Assembly (NCBI GenBank): GCA_010909165.1
Contig: VJWM01000044.1
Span: 682,001-746,000 of the forward strand
Direction of reading: 5' to 3'
Source: Anthoceros angustus
Lineage: Eukaryota > Plantae > Anthocerotophyta
Length of the DNA stretch: 64,000 nucleotides
Shown here piece by piece: positions 13,825-26,328 of the stretch; within the stretch, counting starts at the first letter, position 1; every line of letters begins with the position of its first letter. The translations under genes and the position numbers were made by a program. The notes beneath the pieces are model-generated. The model did no database searches. It saw only the letters and a program-made list of their open reading frames with translations, and was not told the origin of the DNA.

Positions 13825-15404
13825 TCTATGATAGGAGAAGGACTCAACAAGAGCAAGGAGAAGGGGCTTGTTGACTTACGCCGGAATGTATGTAGGTGGA
13901 AGGTGTGATACCAGACGAACTTCGTTACATTTATATCTGTCCTGAAAACATGCAGTATCATTGCAGCCTTTGCAGCGCGTTCTCGTGCTCACAAAGTATT
14001 ATCATACTAGACGTTAGGGCATCCCGTTGTGTGTCAATCTGGTTGACACAAGAAGGGAATGGTGCGTGGGGAGTGTGATCAACGCTCACAGTTGTTTGAC
14101 TCTCCAGTTAAGTCTGACGCAGTCATGCACTGCGCTTCCTCTTGCCAAGGAGATGCAGACGAGGATGAAATGCATGATTACGACTCCTGTGGCAAATGGC
14201 ACATTTGTGGCAGTCTTTTCTGCAATGTAGTCATGCTACCTCGGGGGACAAGTATCCCAAGATCCCACGAGTATTAACAGAGATTACCGCATCAGTGTGA
14301 CTGTGGAGCATTAATGTATGTCTCACTAATAGTATTCGCCGCTCTGGACTCCTGACCAGGGCACAAGAGTTGGTTTCCAGAATGCCCATGCAGCAGCATT
14401 ACTTGCCTGATTGGCTATCCATGCTTTGAGCTTGCCTCAAATGTCGCAAAGCAGCACTGGGTACACTTGCATTCGCGTGTGCAGAGCCTCAAGAAGCCGC
14501 GGCATGAGTTCTGAAGGCTAACACATTTGCTAATGGAGGATGCAAACCCTGGCTTTGCAAAACCACAGCCAACGAAGGCACGGCTGGAACCTGGGCAGAG
14601 AGCTGAATCCACCATCAAGAGGAGGTCCATACTTCAGTGGCAGGCAGCTGAAATCATGGATCCATCAACAGAAATCACGAAGATGCTTCCCGTACACACA
14701 AGATAAAAAGTGAAACATACCGTTTTGACGAGAAGCTGCAACACCTGGAAAAAGGTGGACGAATTGTCCGGTACTTGAAGGCGTCTCTTGTTCGTCAATG
14801 GAGGTTGTGCTGGTACTGGTTTGGTAGGTAGTCAATTCCTTAGCAAAAACAATGACAAAGAAAGCATGTGAGCGTTGCGCAGGAGACTGTCGTTAACCCT
14901 ATAATCTGTATGGATTTTGTAGGCGCAAAGCCATCAACCTTGACCAACATGTACTGTCACAGGAGTAAACTGGATCCTTGGCGGCCAGTAAGAGCCGAGG
15001 AAAATCCGCATTGCAGCCAACCGATGTTGAAGAGGGGTTTTTTTAACGAGGGGAGGGATGCCGCCCATGTGACCCCCATTGACCCATCTTGGCAAATGGC
15101 AAAGGCGCACTCAGATTTTTTTCGCTGATGAGTAGCTACTTTACAAGTGTTGCTGCATCAGTCTTCCGTGGGCAACGTCTCGGTGGTCAGGCAGGAAGAG
15201 CGGAATTCCAGACCAGCGTGCGGTGAGGCAGGCATTGCATCTGCCATGGTTCATCCTTCCATGGATTGTTTGCTTCCTTGCTTGCAAATCTGCGGATGAA
15301 AAATGTGGGAATTTACAGGCTGGCTAGGCTTCGCTCCTTGCTTCCTTGCTTGGAAACCTGGGGATGACAGTGATGTGGTTTTACAGGCAGGCTAGGCTTG
15401 CGCA

Positions 15405-18400
15405 ATGCAGAGCCTGGCAGGAGCGGGCGTTTGGCCGTGCGCCGGGCATGCCACCGTCGGGGAGAAGCCCAGTGGCTGCAAGCTGCATCCGCAGCCGCAG
15501 CCGCAGGGGCGGATCCGCGGGTGCGGCTTCCGTCGGAGATGAAAGGCGCCAGCCTAACGCACAGCAAGGAGCAGGCTCTGGAGGAGAAGAAGACGCACAG
15601 GAGCCTTGTGCGCGTGCGAGCGGCCCAGACTGCCAGCAGAGGCGCCGACCTGGTGGGATCGTACTCGGAGCCGGTGCTGGAGTCGCCCCGGGCTGATGTG
15701 GTGGAGCTCAAGGCAGGTGGTGCTGTCCAGGAAGAACCACGGCATTCTCGTGGACATCCCGGCGCTGCTGTGGGACAACTACGCGGAGCTCTTCCAGGGC
15801 AGCGGATTGAGCTCCGGCTCGTCGGCGTGGATTTGGATCCAGGTGCGGAATTCCTGTCCTTAGCCCTCCTCAGCAGCAGGTGATGACAGTGTGCGGATTT
15901 GGGTCGGAATTGAGTTGGATCTTGCCAATTTCTTGCTTGTTGCAGACACGAACGGGCTGAAGCTAAGCCCTCCCACGACGGTGGAAGGCTGGGCTGTCCG
16001 AGAGCTCTTCCTGTCAGGGGACACCGAGTTCGATGTCACGTTCAAGGTGCCCGCGGATTTCGGCGACCCCGGGGCGTTTCTGGTGCGCAACAACCATCCC
16101 CGGGAGTTCCTCATGGTGTCACTGGCAATTGAGAAGCCCGACAGGAGCCTCATCAAGTTCCGTGCCAACTCATGGGTGTACAATACCTCCAAGTACACAT
16201 CCGACCGCGTCTTCTTCAGCAACAAGGTACTTCCTTCCCTTGGCCAGGCCATGATTCCAGCACTGCTGAATCAAAATCAAGCCGTGGGAAATTTTCAAGG
16301 TGCCTCACACTGTCTAACTCTTTCTTGCAGACATACCTGCCCAAGGACACTCCACCAGCCCTGCGAGCTCTCCGAGAGCAGGAGTTGCGGACGCTGCAGG
16401 GAGATGGCACGGGAGAGCGGAGACACTGGGAGCGCGTCTACGATTTCGACGTCTACAACGACCTGGGAAATCCGGGCTGGACCTTCAATGGGAAGAGGCC
16501 AACGCTGGGAGGCTGGAGCGGCCTTATCCTCGCCGAATGCGGACGGGAAGGCCTCCTTCTTTTTCGACCCACAGGCAGAGAGCGTGGTGAACATGTTCAC
16601 GGGAGATTTTCTAACCTTCAAGGTAGGCCCTGATCCGCTGGGAAACTTCTACATTCCCCGGGACGAAAGGTATGACAGGACCAAGTACACAGCCGTGCTG
16701 CTGGGGAGCGTCTTTGGCATGGTGCACGGGATTGTTCCAGTCGTGCGCAGCCTCTTCTCCGGCAAGCCCAACGAGTACCAGAGCCTGGCCGAGGTTCGCG
16801 CCATGTACGAGGACAAGTTTGAGGATGGAGGCAAGAGCTGGTTCAAGTATCCTCTGCCCCAAGTTGCTGCTGGTACGCATCAATCTTCCCTTCCCTCCCT
16901 TTCCCTTCCCTTCCCTTCCCTTCCCTCCCCTGTGTGTGCATCCTTGGAAGAATTCCCAATGCTCACCATACTTTCTTCCAATTGCAATTGCAATGTAGCT
17001 GCTCGCCTCGCCCTCTTCTCATCTCATTCACATCGCGATGTGTTGCAGCTGACGATCTGGCGTGCCTGGACGACGAGGAGTTTGCTCGGCAGGCTGTGGC
17101 GGGCTTCAGCCCCATGGTCGTGGAGAGAGTGACAGTACGTGGACGATTCTTGAAATCCCGTGCGGTGCTACTTGCTTGTCATGATTGCTGTTGTGATGAT
17201 TCGTGATGGTGGCACGGGAAGTGTGAGGCACAGAGAAGGAGTTGGAACGTGCTGACGAAATCGACCTGTCACAGGAGTACCCGCCGCGAGGCCGGACTGG
17301 GCTTACCAACGAGCACATCAGGCCCTACCTGGAGGGGCTGAGCGTGGAGCAAGCCATCGCGAGCAAGCGGCTGTTCAAGGTGGACTCTCACGACCTCTAC
17401 TACCCGTTCATCGAGCGGATCAACGCGCAGAAGAACCGCAGGTACGCTCCTCGCACCATCCTGTTTCTGAACGGCGAGGGCAAGCTGACGCCGGCGGCCA
17501 TCGAGCTGGACTCGGTGAAGGCGATCCAGGTGCTGACTCCGCCGAGGGCCAAGGACGGGAGGCGAAGGCGGCCAAGGACTGGCGCTGGGAGCTGGCCAAG
17601 CTCCACGCCAGCCAGATGGACTTCGCGTACCACGAGCTGGTGACGCACTGGATGCAGACGCACGCGTGCGTGGAGCCTTTCATCATCGCGTCGCACCGGC
17701 AGCTGAGCGCGCTGCACCCGATCAAGACCTTGCTGCAGCCGCATCTGATCAACACGCTTTCGGCCAACATGTCCGGGCGGCAGATCCTGGTGAGCGCGGG
17801 CGGCTACATCGAGCTCTTCTTCGTCACCGGGCCGGTGACGATGGAGGTGAGCCAGGCGGCGTACCCGGCCTGGCGCTTCGACCAGCAGGCGCTGCCGGAG
17901 GACCTGGTGGCGCGCGGCATGGCGGAGCGCACCCGGACGGCGGCGTCCGGCTGGTTCTGGAGGACTACCCTACGCCAAGGACGGGCTGGAGCACTGGGCG
18001 GCTCTGCAGGCCTGGGTGGAGCGGGTGGTCGGCTTGGCCTACTCCAGCGACGAGCAGGTGGTCGCCGACCAGGAGGTGCAGGCTTGGTATCGCGACATCC
18101 GGGAGCGCGGGCACGGCGACCACAAGGACCAGCCCTGGTGGCCGCGGGTGGACGGCCGCGAGGGCCTCATCCGTGTCCTCACCATCATCCTCTGGATCAC
18201 CAGCGGCCGCCACGCCGCCGTGCACTACGGCCAGTTTCCTTACGCAGGCTACGTCCTCAACCGCCCGGGCTTCCTGCGCCGCCTCATCCCGGAGCCCGGC
18301 ACGCCGGAGGACGCGGAGCTGCAGGCCGATCCGGAGAAGTTCGTGCTCTCCACTCTGGCGTCCAGGTTCAAGAACTTCGCGGTGGTGACGGGGCCGAGAC

Positions 18401-18656
18401 TCTTTCCATCCACCCGACCAATGAGGAGTACATTGGCACGCGGAACCAGGACAATTGGACGTCCGACCCCAAGCTACTGGAAGCCTTCCGCCTCTGGGGC
18501 GAGGATTTGCAACGCATAGAGCGCAACATCCAAGAGCGAAATGCCGACCTCTCTGCACCACAGGACTGGCCCCGCCGCATGCCCTACTCACTGCTTTACC
18601 CCTCGTCGGGCCCGGGCATCACCGGCAGAGGCGTGCCCTACAGTCTGTGCGCCTAG
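15405..18656 (+). CDS. LOX: Lipoxygenase copy 1 (PLAT plus catalytic domain); frameshifted as assembled
   Basis: PLAT-like VPADFGDPGAFLVRNNHPREF, FRANSWVY, YLPKDTP, ERVYDFDVYNDLG, YIPRDE, DDEEFARQ..AG.SP, HELVTHWMQTHA, LHPI..LL.PH, WRFDQQALPEDLVARG, HAAVHYGQ and GRGVPYSLCA*. Several 1-bp homopolymer indels. Confidence 0.93.
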
Positions 18657-19776
18657 CCCCGTTTTCAACCGAGCCTGGTCTTGTTTGAAAAGACGAATTA
18701 CTCTACGTTTGTGTGTTCCATGGGAGGGACATTGTATGTAGCCCTTGTCGATAAATGTTCTTCAGCACCACAGCTGGCGTTTTGATGATGCAAGTTTTGC
18801 AGGCTCTGGTCTGCGACTGTCCGTGTAGATGGTGTCATATACTTGTGATAGCTGGCCAGCTTTGGCTGTGTGCGATTCTCAGTTCACGGGAAACCAACAG
18901 GTTGGAGGCTTTGTTTTTTCTGTCATAAGTGCTAATTGATGAGCCTTGTGACGCTGCCTTGGTGTAGAGACGCCAATTTTGGTGGCCCTTCAAGAGGAGG
19001 TCCATACTTCAGTGGCAGGCAGCTGAAATCATGGATCCATCAACAGAAATCACGAAGATGCTTCCCGTACACACAAGATAAAAAGTGAAACATACCGTTT
19101 TGACGAGAAGCTGCAACACCTGGAAAAAGGTGGACGAATTGTCCGGTACTTGAAGGCGTCTCTTGTTCGTCAATGGAGGTTGTGCTGGTACTGGTTTGGT
19201 AGGTAGTCAATTCCTTAGCAAAAACAATGACAAAGAAAGCATGTGAGCGTTGCGCAGGAGACTGTCGTTAACCCTATAATCTGTATGGATTTTGTAGGCG
19301 CAAAGCCATCAACCTTGACCAACATGTACTGTCACAGGAGTAAACTGGATCCTTGGCGGCCAGTAAGAGCCGAGGAAAATCCGCATTGCAGCCAACCGAT
19401 GTTGAAGAGGGGTTTTTTTAACGAGGGGAAGGATGCCGCCCATGTGACCCCATTGACCCATCTTGGCAAATGGCAAAGGCGCACTCAGATTTTTTCGCTG
19501 ATGAGTAGCTACTTTACAAGTGTTGCTGCATCAGTCTTCCGTGGGCAACGTCTCGGTGGTCAGGCAGGAAGAGCGGAATTCCAGACCAGCGTGCGGTGAG
19601 GCAGGCATTGCATCTGCCATGGTTCATCCTTCCATGGATTGTTTGCTTCCTTGCTTGCAAATCTGCGGATGAAAATGTGGGAATTTACAGGCTGGCTAGG
19701 CTTCGCTCCTTGCTTCCTTGCTTGGAAACCTGGGGATGACAGTGATGTGGTTTTACAGGCAGGCTAGGCTTGCGCA

Positions 19777-22700
19777 ATGCAGAGCCTGGCAGGAGCGGGC
19801 GTTTGGCCGTGCGCCGGGCATGCCACCGTCGGGGAGAAGCCCAGTGGCTGCAAGCTGCATCCGCAGCCGCAGCCGCAGGGGCGGATCCGCGGGGTGCGGC
19901 TTCCGTCGGAGATGAAAGGCGCCAGCCTAACGCACAGCAAGGAGCAGGCTCTGGAGGAGAAGAAGACGCACAGGAGCCTTGTGCGCGTGCGAGCGGCCCA
20001 GACTGCCAGCAGAGGCGCCGACCTGGTGGGATCGTACTCGGAGCCGGTGCTGGAGTCGCCCCGGGCTGATGTGGTGGAGCTCAAGGGCAAGGTGGTGCTG
20101 TCCAGGAAGAACCACGGCATTCTCGTGGACATCCCGGCGCTGCTGTGGGACAACTACGCGGAGCTCTTCCAGGGGCAGCGGATTGAGCTCCGGCTCGTCG
20201 GCGTGGATTTGGATCCAGGTGCGGAATTCCTGTCCTTAGCCCTCCTCAGCAGCAGGTGATGACAGTGTGCGGATTTGGGTCGGAATTGAGTTGGATCTTG
20301 CCAATTTCTTGCTTGTTGCAGACACGAACGGGCTGAAGCTAAGCCCTCCACGACGGTGGAAGGCTGGGCTGTCCGAGAGCTCTTCCTGTCAGGGGACACC
20401 GAGTTCGATGTCACGTTCAAGGTGCCTGGATTTCGGCGACCCAGGGCGTTTCTGGTGCGCAACAACCATCCCGGAGTTCCTCATGGTGTCACTGGCAATT
20501 GAGAAGCCCGACAGGAGCCTCATCAAGTTCCGTGCCAACTCATGGGTGTACAATACCTCCAAGTACACATCCGACCGCGTCTTCTTCAGCAACAAGGTAC
20601 TTCCTTCCCTTGGCCAGGCCATGATTCCAGCACTGCTGAATCAAAATCAAGCCGTGGGAAATTTTCAAGGTGCCTCACACTGTCTAACTCTTTCTTGCAG
20701 ACATACCTGCCCAAGGACACTCCACCAGCCCTGCGAGCTCTCCGAGAGCAGGAGTTGCGGACGCTGCAGGGAGATGGCACGGGAGAGCGGAGACACTGGG
20801 AGCGCGTCTACGATTTCGACGTCTACAACGACCTGGGAAATCCGGGCTGGACCTTCAATGGGAAGAGGCCAACGCTGGGAGGGCCGGAGCGGCCTTATCC
20901 TCGCCGAATGCGGACGGGAAGGCCTCCTTCTTTTTTCGACCCACAGGCAGAGAGCGTGGTGAACATGTTCACGGGAGATTTTCTAACCTTCAAGGTAGGC
21001 CCTGATCCGCTGGGAAACTTCTACATTCCCCGGGACGAAAGGTATGACAGGACCAAGTACACAGCCGTGCTGCTGGGGAGCGTCTTTGGCATGGTGCACG
21101 GGATTGTTCCAGTCGTGCGCAGCCTCTTCTCCGGCAAGCCCAACGAGTACCAGAGCCTGGCCGAGGTTCGCGCCATGTACGAGGACAAGTTTGAGGATGG
21201 AGGCAAGAGCTGGTTCAAGTATCCTCTGCCCCAAGTTGCTGCTGGTACGCATCAATCTTCCTTCCCTCCCTTCCTTCCTTCCTTCCTTCCTCCTGTGTGT
21301 GCATCCTTGGAAGAATTCCCAATGCTCACCATACTTTCTTCAATTGCAATTGCAATTGCAATGTAGCTGCTCGCCTCGCCCTCTTCTCATCTCATTCACA
21401 TCGCGATGTGTTGCAGCTGACGATCTGGCGTGCCTGGACGACGAGGAGTTTGCTCGGCAGGCTGTGGCGGGCTTCAGCCCCATGGTCGTGGAGAGAGTGA
21501 CAGTACGTGGACGATTCTTGAAATCCCGTGCGGTGCTACTTGCTTGTCATGATTGCTGTTGTGATGATTCGTGATGGTGGCACGGGAAGTGTGAGGCACA
21601 GAGAAGGAGTTGGAACGTGCTGACGAAATCGACCTGTCACAGGAGTACCCGCCGCGAGGCCGGACTGGGCTTACCAACGAGCACATCGAGCCCTACCTGG
21701 AGGGGCTGAGCGTGGAGCAAGCCATCGCGAGCAAGCGGCTGTTCAAGGTGGACTCTCACGACCTCTACTACCCGTTCATCGAGCGGATCAACGCGCAGAA
21801 GAACCGCAAGGGGTACGCTCCTCGCACCATCCTGTTTCTGAACGGCGAGGGCAAGCTGACGCCGGCGGCCATCGAGCTGGACTCGGTGAAGGCGATCCAG
21901 GTGCTGACTCCGCCGAGGGCCAAGGACGGGGAGGCGAAGGCGGCCAAGGACTGGCGCTGGGAGCTGGCCAAGCTCCACGCCAGCCAGATGGACTTCGCGT
22001 ACCACGAGCTGGTGACGCACTGGATGCAGACGCACGCGTGCGTGGAGCCTTTCATCATCGCGTCGCACCGGCAGCTGAGCGCGCTGCACCCGATCAAGAC
22101 CTTGCTGCAGCCGCATCTGATCAACACGCTTTCGGCCAACATGTCCGGGCGGCAGATCCTGGTGAGCGCGGGCGGCTACATCGAGCTCTTCTTCGTCACC
22201 GGGCCGGTGACGATGGAGGTGAGCCAGGCGGCGTACCCGGCCTGGCGCTTCGACCAGCAGGCGCTGCCGGAGGACCTGGTGGCGCGCGGCATGGCGGAGC
22301 GCACCCGGACGGCGGCGTCCGGCTGGTTCTGGAGGACTACCCTACGCCAAGGACGGGCTGGAGCACTGGGCGGCTCTGCAGGCCTGGGTGGAGCGGGTGG
22401 TCGGCTTGGCCTACTCCAGCGACGAGCAGGTGGTCGCCGACCAGGAGGTGCAGGCTTGGTATCGCGACATCCGGGAGCGCGGGCACGGCGACCACAAGGA
22501 CCAGCCCTGGTGGCCGCGGGTGGACGGCCGCGAGGGCCTCATCCGTGTCCTCACCATCATCCTCTGGATCACCAGCGGCCGCCACGCCGCCGTGCACTAC
22601 GGCCAGTTTCCTTACGCAGGCTACGTCCTCAACCGCCCGGGCTTCCTGCGCCGCCTCATCCCGGAGCCCGGCACGCCGGAGGACGCGGAGCTGCAGGCCG

Positions 22701-23028
22701 ATCCGGAGAAGTTCGTGCTCTCCACTCTGGCGTCCAGGTTCAAGAACTTCGCGGTGGTGACGGGGCCGAGACTCTTTCCATCCACCCGACCAATGAGGAG
22801 TACATTGGCACGCGGAACCAGGACAATTGGACGTCCGACCCCAAGCTACTGGAAGCCTTCCGCCTCTGGGGCGAGGATTTGCAACGCATAGAGCGCAACA
22901 TCCAAGAGCGAAATGCCGACCTCTCTGCACCACAGGACTGGCCCCGCCGCATGCCCTACTCACTGCTTTACCCCTCGTCGGGCCCGGGCATCACCGGCAG
23001 AGGCGTGCCCTACAGTCTGTGCGCCTAG
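19777..23028 (+). CDS. LOX: Lipoxygenase copy 2; frameshifted as assembled
   Basis: Same motifs as copy 1, including RPYPRRMRTGRP in frame. Long ORFs 20542-21366 and 21610-23028 carry LOX motifs; shared homopolymer frameshifts lie in the last exon. Confidence 0.93.
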
Positions 23029-25503
23029 CCCCGTTTTCAACCGAGCCTGGTCTTGTTTGAAAAGACGAATTACTCTACGTTTGTGTGTTCCATGGGAGGG
23101 ACATTGTATGTAGCCCTTGTCGATAAATGTTCTTCAGCACCACAGCTGGCGTTTTGATGATGCAAGTTTTGCAGGCTCTGGTCTGCGACTGTCCGTGTAG
23201 ATGGTGTCATATACTTGTGATAGCTGGCCAGCTTTGGCTGTGTGCGATTCTCAGTTCACGGGAAACCAACAGGTTGGAGGCTTTGTTTTTTCTGTCATAA
23301 GTGCTAATTGATGAGCCTTGTGACGCTGCCTTGGTGTAGAGACGCCAATTTTGGTGGCCCTTCAAGGCTGCCAGGATTGATGCCATATTCGTGCCCAGGT
23401 TGAGAGCCAATCCAAACGACATGGAGCCAAACGGTAAACGACATGCACGATTCGGTGACATGGAGGCCATGGATCCGTGGACGCAGTATAAATGCGGGTG
23501 TTGCGGCGGAGAGTTTCGGAGCAGTGGAGTTGCAGAGGATGGCGATGGAGGAGGCTCGCGTCCTTGCTCTGGTCTTCATCGTAGCGGTGACTGTCCACCC
23601 GGCTCCAGGCTTTCAGAACTGCTGTTACATTGCTGCATGAATGAATGGCAGTAACGAGTAGGTTCACTGACAGTACTTGAGTTGTTGTTGTTGGCGTGTT
23701 CTGGTGCTGCAGGCGAGCTTTGTGCTGAGCGATGCTGCGCGCCTTCAGTTTCTGGAGAGCGGCCTGGCCAGCGCCGACATAGCCGCCAACTACTGGAAGC
23801 AGACTCTGGGGCAGGAGAGCGTGCCGGACGAGATTTCAAGGCTGCTGCCGTTGCTGTCGGCCGCGGACGCCTCCAGGATCGCCAGCAGCATTTCCAACGT
23901 CCGCTTGAGCGAGGAGGCCGCGGCAGGCTTGTGCAGCTCCCCGGAGGTGGCGTGCACGGACGACGCGCCCTTCGTGCGCCACATCGCGGTCTCAGGCTCC
24001 CTGGTGGCCGCGGGTGGACGGCCGCGAGGGCCTCATCCGTGTCCTCACCATCATCCTCTGGATCACCAGCGGCCGCCACGCCGCCGTGCACTACGGCCAG
24101 TTTCCTTACGCAGGCTACGTCCTCAACCGCCCGGGCTTCCTGCGCCGCCTCATCCCGGAGCCCGGCACGCCGGAGGACGCGGAGCTGCAGGCCGATCCGG
24201 AGAAGTTCGTGCTCTCCACTCTGGCGTCCAGGTTCAAGAACTTCGCGGTGGTGACGGGGCCGAGACTCTTTCCATCCACCCGACCAATGAGGAGTACATT
24301 GGCACGCGGAACCAGGACAATTGGACGTCCGACCCCAAGCTACTGGAAGCCTTCCGCCTCTGGGGCGAGGATTTGCAACGCATAGAGCGCAACATCCAAG
24401 AGCGAAATGCCGACCCCTCTCTGCACCACAGGACTGGCCCCGCCCGCATGCCCTACTCACTGCTTTACCCCTCGTCGGGCCCGGGCATCACCGGCAGAGG
24501 CGTGCCCTACAGTCTGTGCGCCTAGCCCCGTTTTCAACCGAGCCTGGTCTTGTTTGAAAAGACGAATTACTCTACGTTTGTGTGTTCCATGGGAGGGACA
24601 TTGTATGTAGCCCTTGTCGATAAATGTTCTTCAGCACCACAGCTGGCGTTTTTGATGATGCAAGTTTTGCAGGCTCTGGTCTGCGACTGTCCGTGTAGAT
24701 GGTGTCATATACTTGTGATAGCTGGCCAGCTTTGGCTGTGTGCGATTCTCAGTTCACGGGAAACCAACAGGTTGGAGGCTTTGTTTTTTCTGTCATAAGT
24801 GCTAATTGATGAGCCTTGTGACGCTGCCTTGGTGTGTAGAGACGCCAATTTTGGTGGCCCTTCAAAGGCTGCCAGGATTGATGCCATATTCGTGCCCAGG
24901 TTGAGAGCCAATCCAAACGACATGGAGCCAAACGGTAAACGACATGCACGATTCGGTGACATGGAGGCCATGGATCCGTGGACGCAGTATAAATGCGGGT
25001 GTTGCGGCGGAGAGTTTCGGAGCAGTGGAGTTGCAGAGGATGGCGATGGAGGCTCGCGTCCTTGCTCTGGTCTTCATCGTAGCGGTGACTGTCCACCCGG
25101 CTCCAGGCTTTCAGAACTGCTGTTACATTGCTGCATGAATGAATGGCAGTAACGAGTAGGTTCACTGACAGTACTTGAGTTGTTGTTGTTGGCGTGTTCT
25201 GGTGCTGCAGGCGAGCTTTGTGCTGAGCGATGCTGCGCGCCTTCAGTTTCTGGAGCGGCCTGGCCAGCGCCGACATAGCCGCCAACTACTGGAAGCAGAC
25301 TCTGGGGCAGGGGAGGCGTGCCGGACGAGATTTCAAGGCTGCTGCCGTTGCTGTCGGCCGCGGACGCCTCCAGGATCGCCAGCAGCATTTCCAACGTCCG
25401 CTTGAGCGAGGAGGCCGCGGCAGGCTTGTGCAGCTCCCCGGAGGTGGCGTGCACGGACGACGCGCCCTTCGTGCGCCACATCGCGGTCTCGGGCTCCCTG
25501 GTG
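22505..25503. repeat. Second tandem duplication, about 1494-bp unit x2 (22505-23998 and 23999-25495): LOX 3' end, spacer and BURP 5' end
   Basis: CCCTGGTG occurs at 22505-22512 (LOX), 23999-24006 (junction) and 25496-25503 (BURP). The sequence after 24006 repeats that after 22512. Confidence 0.97.
23539..24525 (+). pseudogene. Chimeric BURP-5'/LOX-3' fragment made by the 1.49-kb duplication
   Basis: BURP exon 1 (MAMEEARVLALVFIVA), an intron and exon 2 up to ...SGSLV are joined at CCCTGGTG to the LOX last-exon tail ending VPYSLCA*. Confidence 0.88.
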
Positions 25504-26328
25504 TGGTACTACGGCCCCGCGAACGAGGGCCCGCTGTTCGGGCGCACCTTGCACAAGCACGACCACAGCAACCACGTCTTCTTCCGCGAGCACCAGCTCA
25601 CGGAGGAGGGCTTCCTGGTGAAGGCGGCGGACGCCATCGCCAACTGGGCCTTGCGCCGGCCTTTCATCCCGCGCGAGGTGGAGGAGGCTCTGCGCCTCGC
25701 ATCCGGGGGCCCGGAGAACGCTTTGCGCATGGACGGCGGCTCCCGGGTCGGGACGAGCATGGACGTGACCCGCCACTTCTGCAACCAGCTGCAGGCGCCG
25801 CAGCTGGTGAAGGACAAGTGGTGGCAGGGGGAGGCGGCCTGCGTGTTCTCGGCGGAGGATCTGACGGACTTCGCGGCGTCCCAGCTGGTGGAGGATGTGC
25901 ACGGCCCCGTAGAGGCGCTGCCCGGCACGGACCTGGACGCCGTGAGCCGGCTGAGCCTGGAGAAGGAGGCCCCCGACGCCACCTTCCGCGTCGCCAAGGT
26001 GGAGCTCAGGAAGGACGTGGCGGGGAGCTTCGTGGCGTGCCACGTCCTGCCCTTCGCGTACCAGGCCATGCTGTGCCACAGCCAGCCCAGCAGCAAGCTG
26101 TACTGGGCGACGCTGGAGTCCACGGCGCACCCCGGCACCACCGTTACCGAGCTCGCTGTTTGTCACATGGACACCAGCAGCTGGAGCCCTGACCACCCGT
26201 CCTTCACCATGATGGGGTCCAAGCCTGGCCAGTCCGAGGCTTGTCACTGGGCCAATTTCGGCTTCCTTGCTCTCTTCCGCGCGAACGATGTCGCCGGCGT
26301 CATTGAGATGCCTTCTGCCGCCGCCTAA
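25040..26328 (+). CDS. BURP-domain protein (RD22/USP-like) with signal peptide; local indels near 25250-25320 as assembled
   Basis: Exon 1 MAMEARVLALVFIVA, intron to about 25210, then YWKQTL..VPDEI and HVFFREHQL. CH-X10-CH-X27-CH-X25-CH-W at 26038-26250; stop TAA at 26326-26328. Confidence 0.93.

Follow-up and report, generated by a model that had tools for sequence, protein, structure and literature searches.

Does a lipoxygenase (LOX) of the hornwort Anthoceros angustus that carries glycine instead of alanine at the Coffa-Brash site form R-configured hydroperoxides? The question is raised by a stretch of 64,000 nucleotides of the genome (contig VJWM01000044.1, positions 682,001 to 746,000; hereafter the window), in which a LOX gene lies in two tandem copies, A and B. 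The initial annotation took the glycine for the mark of a rare plant R-lipoxygenase, alanine being typical of S-LOXs and glycine of R-LOXs. We find that the gene is transcribed and intact. It is spliced from five exons and encodes an N-terminal extension, a PLAT domain and a catalytic domain in 914 codons. With a probability of roughly 0.55, we predict from the glycine at the Coffa-Brash site that the enzyme forms a substantial share of R-configured products. Residues are numbered after soybean LOX-1, and nucleotide positions are those of the window.

The glycine codon and the gene that carries it

Positions 22129-22160 translate to L-S-A-N-M-S-G-R-Q-I, and the motif N-M-S-G-R-Q-I-L-V, with its glycine encoded by GGG, can be read in both LOX copies as the initial annotation had described (Table 1). 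The two units are 99% identical tandem repeats, and their agreement counts as one observation instead of two. The stretch window:22000-22302 aligns with residues 493-591 of soybean LOX-1 (1f8n, 3pzw; phmmer against solved structures) over 99 residues without a gap. Residue 50 of this stretch, the glycine, corresponds to residue 542 of LOX-1 (493+49), an alanine, and the proposed equivalence is correct including its numbering. In the same ungapped alignment, His499 and His504 of LOX-1 are matched by histidines and Thr556/Phe557 by Phe-Phe. The column is unambiguous because the conserved N..xR motif flanks the glycine. It is identical in alignments to LOX-3, L-5 and 9lby, and the glycine stays in the Coffa-Brash column across 61 plant LOXs.

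Transcript and DNA contigs of public sequencing runs were compared with unit B. A transcript contig of 4642 nucleotides (depth 408) from run X2, which is the assembly's own sample, skips four introns, three of which are listed as GT..AG joints. Over the last exon (21643-23360) it shows 0 substitutions, and additional letters are its only differences from the window there; this upholds the view that the glycine codon reflects a substitution rather than an artefact of indels. That the codon lies in a frameshift-free stretch holds for copy B, which is clean over 21643-22303. In copy A the codon is flanked upstream by a frameshift at 17557 and downstream by those that both copies share.

In exon 2 the X2 contig adds letters after 20347, 20426, 20439 and 20472, and in exon 5 it does so at five sites (Table 1). 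Once these are supplied, every exon can be read through in its expected phase and the coding sequence comprises 2745 nucleotides, that is 914 codons plus stop; this corrected frame was verified exon by exon, and an intact expressed allele is present. The corrected translation of exon 2 equals that of copy A, and the corrected C-terminus equals that of a third, partial copy. The same added letters occur in contigs of two related organisms, X3 (DNA) and X11 (spliced like X2). Since the transcript supplies the letters missing at every frameshift of the window, these frameshifts most probably reflect homopolymer errors in a long-read assembly.

Family, iron site and relatives

The Pfam profile PF00305 (Lipoxygenase) matches three pieces of the gene, with E=4.5e-78 for the piece that holds the glycine and 1.6e-42 and 7.1e-38 for the others, and soybean LOX structures are matched at E ~1e-51. 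PF01477 (PLAT/LH2) matches exon 2, read from copy A, at E=4e-9; ~100 residues precede this domain. The domains of a plant-type LOX and the three histidine iron ligands (equivalents of His499, His504 and His690) are all present, and Leu546 and Ile553 are kept. Two further positions of the iron site depart from the plant type, Asn694 being replaced by histidine and the C-terminal isoleucine by alanine. The protein ends in G-V-P-Y-S-L-C-A before the stop codon (23005-23028; also 18633-18656 and 24502-24525), as against a near-universal S-[IV]-S-I. Histidine at 694 and a C-terminal alanine are found in 0 of the 213 plant and algal relatives that align there; by these counts both changes are rarer among plant LOXs than the glycine. 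A literature search on N694H found nothing relevant. In mammalian 12/15-LOXs, histidine at the 694 position is a ligand, and the C-terminal iron ligand of LOXs is a main-chain carboxylate. On both grounds the altered iron site is expected to be compatible with catalysis, and iron binding by the carboxylate of the C-terminal alanine may persist.

The relationship to other LOXs was addressed with a quick maximum-likelihood analysis of 62 rows that left out the Coffa column; the exon pieces of the window, aligned separately, shared one row (exon 1 excluded). The window LOX is placed as sister to a liverwort clade of MpLOX3, MpLOX12, MpLOX13 and Riccia LOXs with a Shimodaira-Hasegawa-like approximate likelihood ratio test (SH-aLRT) support of 98, in a tree where its branch is long and other hornwort sequences are absent. 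The terminal branch measures 0.89, compared with a median of 0.23. Both this position on the tree and the shortness of the introns agree with a bryophyte origin. Neither a profile search nor a search with region 12-232 of the open reading frame at 21610-23025 returned a protein more than ~49% identical over the aligned pieces, in collections that seemingly hold no hornwort proteomes. The liverwort clade is the nearest to the window LOX on the tree, with a best identity of 49%. Unlike the window LOX, all its members have alanine at the Coffa site, asparagine at 694 and a C-terminal isoleucine. MpLOX12, MpLOX13 and the Riccia enzymes are uncharacterised; MpLOX3 of Marchantia polymorpha acts on C20 substrates as a 15S-LOX and on C18 substrates as a 13-LOX and belongs to a group of mostly plastid-targeted bryophyte enzymes (PMC13364333).

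Glycine is rare among plant LOXs, as had been claimed. Among the best 150 representatives of 50%-identity clusters, alanine occupies the Coffa column in 123 and glycine in 11; serine and threonine occur twice each, cysteine and proline once each, and 2 rows are gapped there. A further 118 plant LOX clusters, mostly full-length, have alanine in 111 cases, glycine in 4 and serine in 2. Carriers of glycine include Selaginella moellendorffii (D8SAV0 cluster), Adiantum (A0A9D4V1J7), Hibiscus trionum, Medicago (fragments), Daucus, Vaccinium, the Lamiales Andrographis and Castilleja and the alga Bryopsis. The distribution of the glycine label on the tree requires 9 changes, of which at least 8 are demanded by branches with good support. 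Glycine at this site is, as far as these sequences tell, uncommon but recurrent in land plants, and the glycine of the window appears to have arisen separately, given its placement on the tree and an all-alanine sister clade. A common origin with the Selaginella glycine clade is ruled out by the tree. Within the seven-member 90%-identity cluster of Selaginella, five sequences have glycine and two aspartate, a residue unusual in an active-site wall.

Predicted stereochemistry and its alternatives

The predictive value of the alanine/glycine rule can be judged from enzymes that share the column. The soybean LOX-1 A542G mutant of Coffa et al. 2005 is said to form 9R alongside 13S products, and Ala-to-Gly mutants of Arabidopsis and tomato 9-LOXs are reportedly altered in their products. 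The soybean mutant has its glycine in exactly the same column as the window LOX and is likewise a tail-first enzyme of the 13S type; it differs in being engineered, in being ~45% identical and in having Thr556/Phe557, Asn694 and Ile839. Coral 8R-LOX, Gersemia 11R-LOX and human 12R-LOX also have glycine at the Coffa position, and 8R-LOX (3fg1) aligns ungapped over query residues 1-67, the glycine included. These animal R-LOXs are, however, distant (E ~1e-10 to 1e-16), are devoid of an N-terminal region of the plant type and are restricted to C20 substrates.

A precedent in function is apple LOX1:Md:1a, a natural land-plant LOX with glycine at the Coffa position (Gly567), which forms mainly 13(R)- plus 9(S)-hydroperoxide and becomes a 9(S)-LOX upon the exchange G567A (Schiller et al. 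2015, PMC4595979). This angiosperm enzyme is of type 1 and 9-LOX-like; it has Thr-Val as positional determinant, 13R/9S products, a normal asparagine and a C-terminal isoleucine, whereas the window LOX combines Phe-Phe, His and Ala, belongs to a bryophyte clade and is expected to form its R product at C9/C11. The glycine-bearing LOXs of Selaginella, Adiantum, Daucus, Vaccinium, Andrographis, Castilleja and Hibiscus share the glycine column with the window LOX, but are of separate origin and keep Asn694 and a C-terminal isoleucine or methionine. No product data were found for the uncharacterised glycine-bearing plant LOXs, and a literature search on plant R-lipoxygenases and the Coffa site yielded nothing beyond the apple paper. 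The window LOX joins a set of natural glycine-bearing plant LOXs of which one is characterised.

The R product can be specified further, at least as a proposal. Substrate would bind tail first, as in MpLOX3 of the sister clade, with the bulky Phe-Phe pair as positional determinant. Without the alanine methyl group, O2 would gain access to the near end of the pentadienyl radical, and the R product would arise at the other end of the pentadiene as 9R-hydroperoxide from C18 and 11R-hydroperoxide from C20 substrates, probably together with 13S/15S products. This expectation of 9R/11R follows from the tail-first 15S/13S specificity of the nearest characterised relative and from the retained Phe-Phe.

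Several observations weigh against a substantial R share, and they are best considered with the other explanations of the locus. The substrate orientation proposed above is derived from a single pair of residues and from a relative with an identity of only ~45%. The window LOX does have the residue by which R-LOXs are recognised in sequence, so far in agreement with the initial annotation, but glycine is not a reliable predictor: bony-fish LOXs with glycine form mainly 12S-hydroxyeicosatetraenoic acid with a minor 8R share (PMC10531496), and apple LOX2:Md:2a forms a 13(R) product despite its alanine (PMC4595979). R-specificity of the window LOX is accordingly put forward as a prediction and not as a reading of its sequence, for which the rule is a good lead. 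The fish enzymes suggest an ordinary S-specific LOX (13S/15S), in which other pocket residues would steer O2 to the distal carbon in spite of the glycine, as in zebrafish LOX1 and the bony-fish ALOX15 orthologues. Such an outcome would suit a fold set up for S products, as indicated by an all-alanine sister clade with an S-specific characterised member, and the residues beside the glycine depart from the plant consensus (S-A-N-M-S-G vs I-N-A-L-A). Yet the residue matters in each plant enzyme tested, G567A altering the products of the apple enzyme (PMC4595979), and the fish enzymes still make some R product, a share that falls on Gly-to-Ala exchange (PMC10531496). We regard S-specificity as possible, though on the unlikely side.

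The two changed iron-site positions and the long branch could also mean an altered or weakened activity. Asn694His, the C-terminal Ile-to-Ala change and the Coffa residue would then have changed together in a diverged LOX homologue, in which dioxygenation is lost as the main activity or much weakened; hydroperoxide isomerase, epoxyalcohol synthase and lyase-type activities are candidates. LOX homologues with a main activity other than dioxygenation exist, namely mammalian eLOX3, and moss PpLOX1 has a lyase side activity. The singularity of His694 and the C-terminal alanine among the aligned relatives and the length of the terminal branch fit this explanation. Opposed to it are the retention of all three histidine ligands, Leu546 and Ile553, the normal occurrence of histidine at 694 in mammalian 12/15-LOXs, an abundant transcript and a gene that is kept open in related species, and we consider it improbable. 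That the array consists of decaying pseudogenes or is an artefact of assembly, in either of which cases the glycine would have no functional meaning, is suggested by frameshifts in both window copies, by their near-identical tandem arrangement and by the fusion of the partial third copy to a neighbouring gene. Moreover, the letters that the RNA adds are missing from the DNA contigs X1, which come from the same sample as the transcript. These contigs also lack 11 further letters in 1.6 kb, yet have no substitutions, and we infer, short of proof, that they represent noisy long-read data. The spliced transcript holds exactly the letters that open every exon, these letters recur in two related organisms, one of them with the same splicing, and the differences between window, RNA and X1 are almost all in homopolymer length, a hallmark of consensus error in long-read data. 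The pseudogene explanation is rejected on the RNA evidence, and there is very little to be said for either version.

A substantial share of R-configured product from a transcribed, intact LOX is the reading we prefer. A more far-reaching proposal is that the window LOX is a hornwort lineage-specific enzyme with a remodelled site (Gly at 542, His at 694, C-terminal Ala), whose 9R/11R-hydroperoxides would feed an oxylipin branch not known as a main route in other land plants; this we hold to be doubtful and offer only tentatively.

The repeat array and the place of the enzyme in hornwort biology

Table 1. Features of the LOX locus in window coordinates
Feature	Positions	Strand	Details	Evidence
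Tandem unit A	14612..18994	+	LOX copy A	
Glycine codon, copy A	17775..17777	+	GGG	Copies A and B identical from 17557 onward
Tandem unit B	18987..23366	+	LOX copy B	
LOX exon 1, copy B	19759..20215	+	ATG at 19777; N-terminal extension of ~100 residues, then start of PLAT	X2, 0 differences; open in phase
LOX exon 2	20319..20594	+	PLAT domain; window 6 letters short of RNA and of copy A (15943-16224)	X2; PLAT profile
LOX exon 3	20699..21243	+	Pfam Lipoxygenase profile positions 2-143	0 differences to RNA
LOX exon 4	21416..21502	+	29 codons	GT..AG joint 21502 to 21643
LOX exon 5	21643..23028	+	Catalytic core to stop; 3' untranslated region to at least 23360	Transcript, Pfam, frame check
His499/His504 equivalents	22018..22035	+	H-W-M-Q-T-H	LOX-1 numbering by alignment
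Glycine codon, copy B	22147..22149	+	GGG; Coffa-Brash position (Ala542 of soybean LOX-1)	Ungapped alignment; transcript contig, 0 substitutions
Sloane/Hornung positional determinant	22189..22194	+	Phe-Phe (Thr556/Phe557 of LOX-1); bulky, 13-LOX-like	Alignment
Five assembly length errors	22303..22946	+	Letters missing after 22303, 22339, 22761, 22919 (two) and 22946	X2, X3 and X11 carry the letters
His690 equivalent and position 694	22583..22597	+	H-A-A-V-H; His690 kept, Asn694 to His	Alignment; present in transcript
C-terminal Ala codon and stop	23023..23028	+	Plant LOXs end in Ile	All three copies and RNA
Third, partial LOX copy	23999..24525	+	C-terminal 175 codons in the 1.5-kb repeat	Fused in frame to N-terminus of BURP gene

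Units A and B form a 4.37-kb tandem repeat and are without any difference over the last 1.4 kb. Pure length differences of 1-5 nucleotides, nearly all in homopolymers or short repeats, make up 21 of the 28 difference blocks between them. A further repeat of 1.5 kb (22505-24006 = 23999-25503) gives rise to the open reading frame 23677-24525, in which the signal-peptide exon of a BURP gene is fused to the C-terminus of the LOX. The repeats over 14612-25503 may be real recent duplications or assembly stutter. Intron 3 contains a microsatellite that reads (CCCTT)n in copy A (16888-16927) and (CCTT)n in copy B (21260-21292), one C per unit being the difference, and the number of AATTG units differs between the copies at 16979 and 21342. 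A real recent duplication would hardly be expected to show this pattern, which resembles consensus noise. Compared with the transcript and with related species, the assembly has systematic deletions of 1-2 nucleotides in C/G homopolymers (20347-20472, 22303-22946), and false frameshifts are likely in other genes of the assembly. The BURP-domain gene (PF03181, E=4.6e-31; a plant family) follows the LOX array immediately downstream, in the same orientation (25318-26328). The LOX transcript contig continues for ~1.5 kb beyond 23360 and may run on towards it.

The oxylipin and jasmonate pathway of hornworts is called essentially unstudied in a 2026 review (PMC13364333), and no hornwort lipoxygenase has been characterised so far. 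The initial annotation saw in a land-plant R-LOX a sign of uncharacterised oxylipin chemistry. This goes too far: the window LOX does not open new chemistry by itself, because R-configured products of a glycine-bearing LOX are already documented in apple (LOX1:Md:1a) and the substitution recurs in scattered land plants. Its iron-site variants are the main reason for interest. Well expressed, and at variance with the plant consensus both at the residue of stereo-control and at two positions of the iron site, the window LOX would be a natural test of how far the alanine/glycine rule reaches in plants.

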